A stretch of 64,000 bases of DNA from Saccharolobus solfataricus P2. Its GTDB lineage: Archaea > Thermoproteota > Thermoprotei_A > Sulfolobales > Sulfolobaceae. The notes below the pieces were generated by a model. The model was not told where the DNA came from and made no database searches. It was given only the letters and a program-made list of their open reading frames with translations. Shown here piece after piece: positions 596 to 34,810 of the stretch. The stretch lies in assembly GCF_000007005.1 (NCBI RefSeq), contig NC_002754.1; one strand, written 5' to 3'. The stretch's first letter is position 1. The number at the start of each line of letters is the position of its first letter. The translations under genes and the position numbers were made by a program.

Positions 596-1151
596 CCTTG
601 ATAGTAACTATTCCACCTGGTACCACATCCACATCTTGTATCGATAAATCGTACGCCTCTGCGATTTTTGAGAAAATTTTTCCAGCACATAAGGTAGAGA
701 TTAAACTAAATCCAGTTCCAGTTATTCTAAATTCTATCATATCTCCAGTATTTTTAATCGAGACATTTCTAATAGGTAGTGCAATCTTTATTGCATTATA
801 AAAATCAAATAGCTCATCTAACGTTGAGGCTTTTGATCTCAAGAACGATCCTATTTGTTCTCCTACTTCTTCACACATATTTTCATATTGCTTATTGTCT
901 TTTTCATAAGCCAATTTAGTTAAGTTCTCAAGAAACCAACTAGTTACCGGAACTATATCTAAGGCCTTTGATATTGTATAATAATCTACCAAACTTTCTA
1001 GCGTATTTGCATCCTCACCCTCCTTGAGTAGTTTCAACAAGGCTTTAAGGGCAGCGTTAGTTAAAGAATAGATAGTATAACCTCTCTTTTTCGCCTCATT
1101 TTCTAATTGCTCTATTAGGTCAGCTTCAGCTGCTATATTAACTCTTGGCAT
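576..1151 (-). CDS. Ribbon-helix-helix regulator with C-terminal V4R-like domain
   Basis: N-terminal MPRVNIAAEADLIEQLENEAKKRG...SLTNAAL fits an RHH pattern; the C-terminal alpha/beta domain assignment is inferred. Confidence 0.55.
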   Translation of the reverse strand: MPRVNIAAEADLIEQLENEAKKRGYTIYSLTNAALKALLKLLKEGEDANTLESLVDYYTISKALDIVPVTSWFLENLTKLAYEKDNKQYENMCEEVGEQIGSFLRSKASTLDELFDFYNAIKIALPIRNVSIKNTGDMIEFRITGTGFSLISTLCAGKIFSKIAEAYDLSIQDVDVVPGGIVTIKAKANLK

Positions 1152-1226
1152 ATCTGTCTATAGAGAGTTTGTAAAAAAGGCTATTTATATTTAGTCATGC
1201 TACCGCTTAAAGTTATTTTAAAAGGG

Positions 1227-13759: not shown

Positions 13760-14224
13760 ATGCAGAACTTTAGGGAGCTGTCAATTGATATTGTTCTTTC
13801 GCATAAAATACGGAACTATGACCAAGTAGTTCTTGATGGTACTAAGAAACGTGATTCATGTGCGTTTTTCATTTATGGCTATTGTAAAAAAATTTCGCCA
13901 AGAAGTAAAGTTCTTGCTAGCTGGATATCCAATGGAAAGATTATTCCACATCCCCTATTTTGTTATCTATGCCCATTTTACTCATTAAGAGATGATGACA
14001 AGACTGTAACCGTTGATCTTTTCGATATTTACTTAACATATAAGAATTTAAAGACACAAATTGAAAAAGAATTAGAATTTATAGAGAGTAGGCTCTCAGA
14101 ATTTTCATTTTCCACTTCCATAGCATTGAGAAGAAGAAGAGAGGACTTGATAGCTTTTCTTGATGATATTTCAACTAAGAGTAAAATACTTTTAGAAATA
14201 ATAAGGATGAGTGAGAGAACATGA
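13760..14224 (+). CDS. Cys/His-rich hypothetical protein with C-terminal coiled coil
   Basis: CAFFIYGYC and HPLFCYLCPFY segments; overlaps the next gene's start. Confidence 0.75.
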   Translation: MQNFRELSIDIVLSHKIRNYDQVVLDGTKKRDSCAFFIYGYCKKISPRSKVLASWISNGKIIPHPLFCYLCPFYSLRDDDKTVTVDLFDIYLTYKNLKTQIEKELEFIESRLSEFSFSTSIALRRRREDLIAFLDDISTKSKILLEIIRMSERT

Positions 14225-14892
14225 GGGCAGAAGACTTATTTAATGATCCAAAAAGTTATAAGAGATGGTACGAACTCCACTCTAAGCTATACGAGAATGA
14301 GAGAAATGTAGTTAGAAGTTTTAACCTTAAAGATTGTTTAGATGTAGGATCGGGACCAGATATTTTTCATGAAGAAATTGGAGGAAGAATTGTAGCTCTG
14401 GATATATCGTTACTTATGCTAAAAGAAAGTAAAAGTGACGAGAAAGTGCTAGCTGATGCTTTACATTTACCCTTCAGAGATAACTCATTTAAATGTGTCT
14501 TCAGTTCTGTCACCGTCTGCTTTATAGAAGACGTAAAGGGATTTATAAGGGAGATGGCTAGAATAACTAAAGAAAGAGCAATTATTTGTTTTATAGCCAG
14601 GGATTCTCCGTGGGGTGAATATTATGAGAATCTAGGCAAAAGCGGCCATAAGTATTATTCGCATGCTCGCTTTATATCAAGAAGAGAGTTTTACGTAATT
14701 ATAAACGATTTCATGAAAATTTCTAGAATTAGATCCACGCTAAAAAAGATGAGCGAAACAGAAATCGATGGAGTTTATAACGATGATAGTGGGTCATTTA
14801 TATGTGTGGAAGCTATTCCTATGAAACCGGAGCCCCTTTCATTGAGTCTTAACAGACACTCGGGGGCTGATCCTGCTGACCCTATTTCTTAA
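14221..14892 (+). CDS. Class I SAM-dependent methyltransferase
   Basis: LDVGSGP and ADALHLPFRDNSF motifs; the C-terminal tail overlaps an antisense structured RNA. Confidence 0.88.
   Translation: MRAEDLFNDPKSYKRWYELHSKLYENERNVVRSFNLKDCLDVGSGPDIFHEEIGGRIVALDISLLMLKESKSDEKVLADALHLPFRDNSFKCVFSSVTVCFIEDVKGFIREMARITKERAIICFIARDSPWGEYYENLGKSGHKYYSHARFISRREFYVIINDFMKISRIRSTLKKMSETEIDGVYNDDSGSFICVEAIPMKPEPLSLSLNRHSGADPADPIS
14811..14884 (-). ncRNA. H/ACA-type pseudouridylation guide, predicted target 16S rRNA U8
   Basis: Upper stem AGCCCC/GGGGCU with K-turn-like GA..UGA; pocket strands GCAGGAUC and CCGG complement CCGG-UU-GAUCCUGC at the 16S 5' end; AUA box 14 nt below the stem; upstream BRE-TATA. 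Lower stem is weak. Confidence 0.7.
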
Positions 14893-14906
14893 CTCTAAAC
14901 CTCAAG

Positions 14907-14920
14907 TTTATATTTTTTCC
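14907..14920 (-). promoter_or_regulatory. BRE-TATA element upstream of the antisense guide RNA
   Basis: Minus strand reads GGAAAAAATATAAA about 24 nt upstream of AGGGTCAG. Confidence 0.55.
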
Positions 14921-14929
14921 TAACAACGT

Positions 14930-15060
14930 GCTTCGCGCACTTTTTTGAATTTTTACAAAGAGTTAAGAGGTATCACAAACAGAAATTGTACACTTTAAGA
15001 TTAATTGAAAGGGAAATAATGGCAGTTTAGTGTAAAGATATTCAATAGATCAACTAAGCG
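14930..15060. mobile_element. SM3-like MITE, copy 1 (~131 bp)
   Basis: Aligns end to end with 34681-34810 (8 mismatches over the last 62 bp); flanked by imperfect direct repeats CTAACAACG/TTAACAACA. Size matches Sulfolobus SM3 MITEs as I recall them. Confidence 0.65.
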
Positions 15061-15574
15061 TTAACAACATACCTTTCTTCCCACGCAAGGGGCAATATTA
15101 GTTTAGATTATAAAAACTTAATTGAAAGGTCTAACTACTGAATATTCAAGTCTTATTGACGGTTTCTCAGTCAGTTCCTTATCACTTTTTAAAACTAACT
15201 CTCGTATTATTATTGATTAATCTAGCAAGACGATCTATATTAGTTCTTAGTTCCTCCATTTCTCTTTTTAGAAAAGGTAGAGGAACACTAGAAACGCTTG
15301 AATTCTTTTTTTATCTTATATTTCTTTTTAGCGTACCTATTCTCCTTAGCGAGTTTCATTAGTGTCCGATAACGTAGAAGGGGAACACCAGCTTGTATCT
15401 AGTGATCACGTTTTCGTCGCACTTGCTCTAATCCGTTAGTACTTCTCTTTCTCAAATGTAATATTTGACGTAATTAATTACAAACTTTTGTATAAGTCTG
15501 GAGCGATCACAGCGTAACCGCTTAGGGTAAACCTTAAAAAGGCTTATTTATAATGTTTTTCCATATCTTTACTC

Positions 15575-23294: not shown

Positions 23295-23456
23295 CTACAT
23301 TAATATACTAATCCAAGGTTTATAAACTTTAATTATACTCTAACTTAATATTGTTATCATTCCATCACACATAATAATACTGTTCCAAGTTACTAGAAAG
23401 CTTACATAAAGAAGTACTAATTAAAATTATTAGTATATTCCTCCTATTTAAGCTTA

Positions 23457-23509
23457 ACGTGATGAATAACTCCAATCCTGATCAATGATGTAGTAACTCG
23501 CGACTGAAT
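23457..23509 (+). ncRNA. Box C/D methylation guide sRNA
   Basis: C GTGATGA (23459), 12-nt guide, D' CTGA (23478), C' ATGATGT (23485), 12-nt guide, D CTGA (23504). Confidence 0.9.
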
Positions 23510-34680: not shown

Positions 34681-34810
34681 GCTTTGTGGACTTATTGAAT
34701 TTTCACATAGGGTTAATATTTATTGCAAACCTAAATTGTATATCTTCAGATTAATTGAAAGGGCACTAATAGTGGTTTAGTGTAAAAATATTCAACAGAT
34801 TAACTAAGCA
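34681..34810. mobile_element. SM3-like MITE, copy 2 (~130 bp)
   Basis: Starts GCTTTGTGGACTT and is homologous to 14930-15060; imperfect flanking repeats CTCATCAT/CTCAGCAT. Confidence 0.65.

Follow-up and report, generated by a model that had tools for sequence, protein, structure and literature searches.

The 64,000 nucleotides of the Saccharolobus solfataricus P2 genome analysed here (NC_002754.1; in the following, the window) encode on the minus strand, from 14883 to ~14820, an RNA that is very probably the S. solfataricus orthologue of an atypical (“H/ACA-like”) guide RNA, named sR109 in S. islandicus and sR209 in Pyrobaculum (RF02807). The RNA is already known and not new. What our analysis offers is mainly an annotation correction, namely an unannotated guide RNA orthologue in S. 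solfataricus inside the tail of a methyltransferase open reading frame (ORF). A first-pass annotation made from the letters alone had proposed at this place an antisense kink-turn (K-turn) RNA that guides formation of pseudouridine 8 in 16S rRNA and possibly serves as a U3-like chaperone, and it had suggested covariation analysis as well as Rfam and literature searches as checks. The literature search led to the published orthologue sR109 of S. islandicus, whose guide function has been validated experimentally (Li, Wu and Ye, Nucleic Acids Res 2024, PMC11077068).

Rfam match and architecture of the RNA

When the whole 64 kb window was compared with Rfam, RF02807 (PyrR209, Pyrobaculum sRNA 209, H/ACA-box) matched 14877..14819 (-) over its full length (model positions 1-65/65) with 42.6 bits at a gathering score of 42 and with E = 8.6e-5. 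Both guide arms (GCAGGAUC and CCGG), the GCCCC/GGGGC stem and the K-turn dinucleotides GA...UGA are identical to the family consensus. Besides PyrR209 no Rfam family, U3 included, was found at E <= 1 in 14500-15200. When only the two guide arms and the K-turn dinucleotides were taken as a pattern, the window gave a single match, and 0/100 dinucleotide-preserving shuffles gave one. A covariance model built in this analysis detected no second copy of the RNA in the window, and its weak matches elsewhere are the antisense of 16S 5' ends.

The minus-strand sequence given in the first-pass annotation is exact, and the promoter it proposed corresponds to a TATA-like box at 14918-14907. A similar A/T-rich box lies ~20-30 nt upstream of the 5' arm in most homologues, in Sulfolobaceae as well as in Pyrobaculum. 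K-turns are the L7Ae-binding motif of archaeal H/ACA RNAs. The following features, all on the minus strand, make up the gene as read in the sequence:

14907..14918 (-): TATA-box-like promoter element AAAAAATATAAA, ~24 nt upstream of the predicted RNA start
14869..14883 (-): 5' guide arm AGGGUCAGCAGGAUC (AGGGUCA-GCAGGAUC), with the transcription start predicted at A14883
14876-14869 (-): 5' guide core GCAGGAUC, pairs with 16S G10-C17
14882-14878 (-): GGGUC of the 5' arm, five potential pairs with 16S 20-24 beyond a 1x2 internal loop
14862..14868 (-): pocket-side stem, 5' strand AGCCCC (14868-14863, pairs with 14836-14831), and C14862, opposite the A-A of the other strand
14839..14861 (-): K-turn and apical hairpin, predicted L7Ae-binding motif
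14861-14860, 14843-14841 and 14840-14839 (-): K-turn, consisting of GA on the non-bulged strand, the 3-nt bulge AAU and G14840-A14839
14859-14844 (-): apical hairpin (C-stem) GUGUCU-GUUA-AGACUC with the loop GUUA
14831..14838 (-): A14838-A14837 (mismatch and bulge adjoining the K-turn), then the pocket-side stem, 3' strand GGGGCU (14836-14831)
14827..14830 (-): 3' guide arm CCGG, pairs with 16S C4-G7
14812..14826 (-): 3' tail UUUCAUAGGAAUAGC, in which AUA (14816-14814) follows the pocket at a distance of 14 nt

Near the 3' side the only T-run is a UUU directly after CCGG.

Pairing with the 5' end of 16S rRNA

There is no rRNA gene within the window; PMC3326292 puts the 16S gene of P2 at ~871.7 kb. 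The pairing was judged on the 16S rRNA of Sulfurisphaera ohwakuensis (AP031374.1, Sulfolobaceae, complete genome). This gene, like a much-sequenced Sulfolobaceae rRNA operon, was reached via spurious ORFs inside rRNA genes, and its first base was set by position 1 of the Rfam archaeal small-subunit rRNA model (L135:2028). It begins AUUCCGGUUGAUCCUGCCGGACCCGACC, with the 5' end AUUCCGGUUGAUCCUGCCGGACCC, and is identical letter for letter to the 16S 5' sequence given in the first-pass annotation; a literature text search for this sequence string gave no match. A set of crenarchaeal 16S genes taken from metagenomes has CC at positions 4-5 in 60/60 cases and differs at positions 1-3 (AUU, ACU, AAU and others). 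In these 60 genes the search pattern itself fixed positions 6-59, which are hence no independent evidence.

With the S. ohwakuensis 16S as target, the partner of GCAGGAUC is G10-C17 and that of CCGG is C4-G7, which leaves U8-U9 unpaired at the foot of the stem. With 13 bp, the 5' arm duplex has a predicted energy of -24.2 kcal/mol at 37 °C. The substrate of an H/ACA ribonucleoprotein (RNP) is the 5' one of the two unpaired bases. As U8 is the 5' one of U8-U9, it would be the substrate, which fits pseudouridine 8. The pairing with 16S 4-7 and 10-17, the free U8-U9 and the guide function for pseudouridine 8 proposed in the first-pass annotation thus agree with these duplexes, with RF02807 and with the validated sR109 (PMC11077068).

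The additional pairing of GGGUC with 16S 20-24, which had also been proposed, is real in three Saccharolobus/Sulfolobus species, and the extension is lineage-specific. In the 3' arm, the fourth base changes from species to species (window G, S. islandicus A, S. tengchongensis U, Sulfolobus sp. A20 C). Because this base varies while 16S C4 is invariant (60/60), the 3' duplex is conserved only as the 3 bp CCG:CGG (16S C5-G7), for which -2.3 to -5.6 kcal/mol was predicted at 37 °C. A conserved 3'-arm pairing of 3 bp is an extreme case among H/ACA guides.

Conserved structure among homologues

A pattern scan of one genome per species yielded four copies in Pyrobaculum, one in another member of the Thermoproteaceae and five in Thermofilaceae; ~50 bacterial matches were discarded as chance. 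The scan gave no match in Sulfolobaceae, though the window fits the pattern; its own genome, and perhaps those of near relatives, seem to be missing from or masked in the scanned collection. The syntenic Sulfolobaceae loci were reached through homologues of the methyltransferase protein. The family spans Sulfolobales, Thermoproteales and Thermofilaceae. For covariation, 16 distinct homologues (Sulfolobaceae, Pyrobaculum, Thermofilaceae) were aligned and pairs were counted on a specified structure. Standard pairs filled 95.5% of the cells, and 10/11 pairs were changed on both sides, compared with 33-58% paired cells in a control in which the 3' partners were slid by 1-3 columns. Compensatory changes affect both stems (5/6 pairs of the pocket-side stem, 5/5 of the apical stem). 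For example, GCCCC/GGGGC is replaced by CGCCC/GGGCG, CACCU/AGGUG or CCCUCAC/GUGAGGG.

The K-turn GA...UGA is invariant in 16/16 homologues. The second pair of the apical (canonical) stem, window 14858/14845 (alignment columns 27/45), is a conserved non-Watson-Crick pair flanked by covarying pairs: U.U in Sulfolobaceae, U.C or U.U in Thermofilaceae and A.C in Pyrobaculum. According to the unified model of H/ACA(-like) guides, ten layers between pocket and K-turn (“GA stem”) are needed for productive guides (Toffano-Nioche et al., PMC4652768). Up to and including the second G.A, the count above the pocket is six pairs, C.A, a bulged A and two G.A for the window RNA, and A.G, seven pairs and two G.A for the RNAs of two metagenomic Sulfolobaceae (L071 and L072). 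Judged from these sequences, both would reach ten layers by different means, and the stem between pocket and K-turn would keep its ~10 layers across such changes.

A lower stem that closes the pocket was absent from both the minimum free energy (MFE) and the centroid fold, and the flanks beyond the arms are neither conserved nor complementary among the homologues. The first-pass annotation had described a weak lower stem as in atypical crenarchaeal guides; this remark is right, the family being defined by the lack of this stem.

The first-pass annotation had seen exact H/ACA geometry including an AUA box. The pocket bears this out, and AUA does stand 14 nt after the pocket-closing pair in the window RNA and in S. 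islandicus (15 nt in Sulfolobus sp. A20). However, the box is not conserved: ANA at 14-16 nt is absent in S. tengchongensis (L069), L071 and L072, all three with tails free of coding constraint, and in most Thermoproteales copies. The AUA is retained only where the tail lies antisense to the conserved codons E-A-I-P of the methyltransferase, as in the window, S. islandicus and Sulfolobus sp. A20; in the window, 14812-14817 is the antisense of codons Ala198-Ile199. Across the family, as read from these sequences, the H/ACA geometry holds for the pocket and not for the box.

Genomic context

The RNA gene lies opposite the 3' end of a methyltransferase ORF:

14221..14892 (+): convergent ORF of a class I S-adenosylmethionine-dependent methyltransferase, 223 aa, whose last ~23 codons (~14821-14889) are antisense to the RNA gene

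Most homologues of this methyltransferase end at ...GSFICVEAIP (200-206 aa), ~22 codons earlier, and the ~23-residue tail occurs only in the S. solfataricus / islandicus / shibatae group and on one short contig. The tail MKPEPLSLSLNRHSGADPADPIS (14821-14892 (+)) is the RNA gene read backwards (...SGADPADPIS) and is not conserved. By comparison of these sequences, the annotated C-terminus of the methyltransferase is probably a read-through accident, since the RNA gene happens to lack a stop in this frame.

Outside the window, the methyltransferase (14221-14889) recurs residue for residue and within the same gene order (nucleoside hydrolase, Fur, methyltransferase, cation efflux, NurA, Rad50) in LT549890.1 and CP033235.1, which we take to be S. 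solfataricus genomes. One truncated member of the methyltransferase cluster is named S. solfataricus. The RNA adjoins the methyltransferase gene in 5/5 further syntenic loci, which belong to Saccharolobus sp. (L068), S. tengchongensis (L069), Sulfolobus sp. A20 (L070) and the two metagenomic Sulfolobaceae (L071, L072). It is intergenic in the latter two, and in S. tengchongensis (CP146016.1, L069 3228-3290 (+)) the whole RNA unit together with its TATA box is inverted and located ~120 nt past the methyltransferase stop codon. Since the TATA box precedes most copies and the unit inverts with its box in S. tengchongensis, we regard the RNA as an independent gene. The antisense relation to the methyltransferase 3' end, as put forward in the first-pass annotation, therefore describes the overlap in the window correctly and does not extend to the family, in view of the non-conserved tail and this inversion. 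A functional link between the RNA and the methyltransferase was considered and rejected, as the neighbouring genes in Pyrobaculum and Thermofilaceae are unrelated. A Thiamine_BP (PF01910) gene lies within ~2 kb of the small RNA (sRNA) in P. oguniense (L028 3301-3600 (-)) and in L071/L072 (~903-1200 (+)), which is probably coincidence.

Correspondence with sR109 of S. islandicus

By RNA immunoprecipitation and sequencing, Cbf5-bound RNAs of S. islandicus were purified and six H/ACA RNAs were obtained (PMC11077068). One of them, sR109, is described as an atypical H/ACA RNA that has no ACA motif and guides pseudouridine 8 of 16S rRNA; deletion of sR109 abolished this modification and slowed growth (PMC11077068). 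The reconstituted sR109 RNP modified 16S-U8 in vitro in a reaction dependent on L7Ae and Gar1, and electrophoretic mobility shift assays were also reported (PMC11077068). The authors further found that uridines 5 and 14 of sR109 are themselves modified by Cbf5, and they pointed out a homologous predicted guide in P. aerophilum (PMC11077068).

The S. islandicus loci L136-L139, which include LAL14/1 (CP003928.1), carry AGGGUCAGCAGGAUCAGCCCCCGAGUGUCUAUUAAGACUCAAUGAAAGGGGCUCCGA beside the same methyltransferase. This sequence is identical to the window RNA at 56/58 nt, the two mismatches falling in the loop and at position four of the 3' arm; over the first 57 nt, which run from the predicted start to the end of CCG, only the loop base differs. 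The S. islandicus proteins fall into the cluster of an 86%-identical methyltransferase, which presumably also covers the accession range of strain REY15A. The window RNA thus shares with S. islandicus sR109 its locus (methyltransferase, cation-efflux / NurA / Rad50), its K-turn hairpin and its target, whereas its 3' arm can form 4 bp with 16S, having G as the fourth base, compared with 3 bp for S. islandicus sR109, which has A. A start at A14883 would place U at positions 5 and 14 (AGGGU5CAGCAGGAU14C), as in the self-modified sites of S. islandicus sR109. Each of the two uridines is preceded by GG(G/A), which could pair with the 3'-side UCC, in line with the published description (PMC11077068). 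As the positions of U5 and U14 fit the published sites, we consider them good evidence that the window RNA is the orthologue of S. islandicus sR109. By analogy, expression, RNA ends and modification of U8 would be the same in S. solfataricus.

A second difference concerns the DNA just upstream of the promoter, where this genome has ~600 bp of extra DNA (14925-15521) that begins ~7 nt upstream of the TATA box of the sRNA, whereas the S. islandicus and Saccharolobus sp. loci have a ~52-nt gap instead. Within this segment, 14942-15059 shares 80% identity with 34692-34809, pointing to a repeated or mobile element. The segment 14925-15521 showed no terminal inverted repeats.

The name sR109 has been used twice. 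An older “H/ACA box sR109” of S. solfataricus P2 is listed at P2 595,510-595,579 and was also reported as circular (PMC3326292, Table 1). It is a different RNA from S. islandicus sR109, and the shared name is a clash; as a guess, the older RNA may be homologous to S. islandicus sR435.

Taken together, these data suggest the following mode of action. The RNA would be transcribed from its own TATA promoter and fold into a single hairpin with a K-turn in its stem, on which L7Ae would bind while Cbf5-Nop10-Gar1 would assemble on the stem. A lower stem is absent, and the single-stranded 5' arm (GCAGGAUC and GGGUC) would pair with 16S 10-17 (and 20-24) and the short 3' arm CCGG with 16S 4-7. U8 and U9 would then lie unpaired at the foot of the stem, where Cbf5 would turn U8 into pseudouridine.

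Several points weigh against this identification. The score against RF02807 exceeds the gathering score by just 0.6 bits, and the other Sulfolobaceae copies remain below it (31.8-37.3 bits). The predicted fold is no more stable than that of shuffled sequences (z = 0.17), which is expected for a K-turn RNA and gives no support. The pairing was judged on the 16S rRNA of S. ohwakuensis and not on that of S. solfataricus. In the literature searched, we found no expression or modification data for the S. solfataricus RNA. Finally, the identity with the published sR109 (PMC11077068) is based on function, on the locus, on where U5 and U14 fall and on a guide that is unique independently of synteny.

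A possible chaperone role and other explanations

In eukaryotes, the 5' end of 18S rRNA is paired by box A/A' of U3, an RNA of the box C/D class, and this part of 18S is homologous to the universally conserved GAUCCUG..., from which helix 1 and the central pseudoknot are built. The RNA of the window might act in a similar manner in addition to its guide function, such that the bound RNP would delay folding of 16S helix 1 and the central pseudoknot as box A of U3 does. Base-pair logic is compatible with this idea: the arms cover 16S 4-7 and 10-17/20-24, so that helix 1 (4-8 / 16-20) and the pseudoknot loop (12-14) are blocked while the guide is bound. This block, which applies to the published sR109 as well, and the slower growth of its deletion strain are the only support for the idea. 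However, a transient block of local folding is common to any guide RNA. The 5' arm is unusually long, reaching 13 bp in the window RNA and 14 contiguous bp in Thermofilaceae, but the family does not keep this length (P. oguniense has 9 bp and L072 has 10 bp), and a long 5' arm may simply offset the 3-4 bp of a 3' arm that is kept short by the nearby 16S 5' end, at ~80 °C and unconstrained by a lower stem. The slower growth of the S. islandicus sR109 deletion would agree with either role, as the effects of missing pseudouridine 8 and of missing binding are not separated (PMC11077068). Chaperone roles of archaeal small RNPs are considered possible in a review (PMC3608112). The same review, citing Dennis et al. 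1997, states that U3-like sequences are present in cis in the pre-rRNA leader and that U3-like sRNAs are seemingly absent in Archaea. Hallmarks of U3 are missing from the window RNA, and Rfam returned no U3 match (E <= 1 in 14500-15200; E <= 0.5 in the window). All in all, we regard an additional chaperone function as unlikely. We also give only a slim chance to its more specific form, in which RNPs of the sR109/sR209 family would clamp 16S 4-24 as an analogue of U3 box A that times helix 1 and the pseudoknot, and in which this clamp rather than pseudouridine 8 would explain the slow growth of the deletion strain. Only if such a chaperone role proved real would the locus bear on how ribosome assembly evolved.

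Regarding the history of this idea, a U3-like RNA of S. acidocaldarius was reportedly described in 1995 and later withdrawn; that RNA is not known to be linked to this locus. The tail UUUCAUAGGAAU also looks like the part of yeast U3 that directly follows box A. This was dismissed as chance, since already in S. islandicus the tail is no longer conserved and since it is under coding constraint.

As a cis-antisense regulator, the RNA would act mainly on the 3' end of the convergent methyltransferase mRNA. It lies wholly inside the last ~24 codons of the ORF in S. solfataricus and S. islandicus, and its linkage to the methyltransferase gene is kept across Sulfolobaceae. Yet the overlapped tail is missing from most homologues (which end ...VEAIP), the unit is inverted and hence co-directional in S. 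tengchongensis, the copies of L071 and L072 are intergenic, and the neighbours in Pyrobaculum and Thermofilaceae are unrelated. Moreover, conservation falls on the guide arms and the K-turn and not elsewhere. We therefore consider this explanation very improbable. A mere chance resemblance within coding sequence, for which one could cite the MFE, which is not better than that of shuffles, and the marginal Rfam score, is scarcely credible given 0/100 shuffles with the pattern, compensatory changes across three orders, a TATA box of its own and an experimentally validated orthologue.

Comparison with known systems

Next to S. islandicus sR109, the closest known systems include sR209 of Pyrobaculum (RF02807), one of the H/ACA-like sRNAs reportedly described by Bernick et al. 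in RNA in 2012. The window RNA and sR209 share a full-length model match, the same arms (GCAGGAUC, CCGG), the GCCCC/GGGGC stem, a K-turn in which a base is bulged beside the G.A pairs and the missing lower stem. In comparison with sR209, the apical hairpin of the window RNA is shorter and richer in A/U, the 5' arm carries the additional interrupted GGGUC extension and the genomic neighbours are others.

Canonical archaeal H/ACA sRNAs such as Pyrococcus Pf9 and S. islandicus sR115 and sR435 have the K-turn in the upper stem, the bipartite guide, the unpaired U with one further base and the ~10 stacked layers from pocket to K-turn in common with the window RNA, and the same set of proteins is expected. 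In contrast to them, the window RNA has neither the lower stem of 7-9 bp nor a conserved ACA/ANA box. The atypical sR109 depends more strongly on Gar1 and L7Ae than canonical H/ACA RNAs do, according to PMC11077068.

It is general knowledge that eukaryotic U3 also pairs with the 5'-terminal segment of small-subunit rRNA. Unlike U3, the window RNA has no C/D or B/C boxes, no terminal C/D pair and no hinge pairing with the 5' external transcribed spacer; its single K-turn lies inside a hairpin. It would belong to an RNP of the H/ACA type rather than the fibrillarin type, and the demonstrated job of its orthologue is modification.

A further guide RNA gene in the window

At the gathering score, Rfam gave two matches in the whole window. 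The second is an unrelated C/D box methylation guide, sRNA sR9 (RF01312), at 23455-23509 (+), which matches its model over the full length with 44.2 bits at a gathering score of 36.

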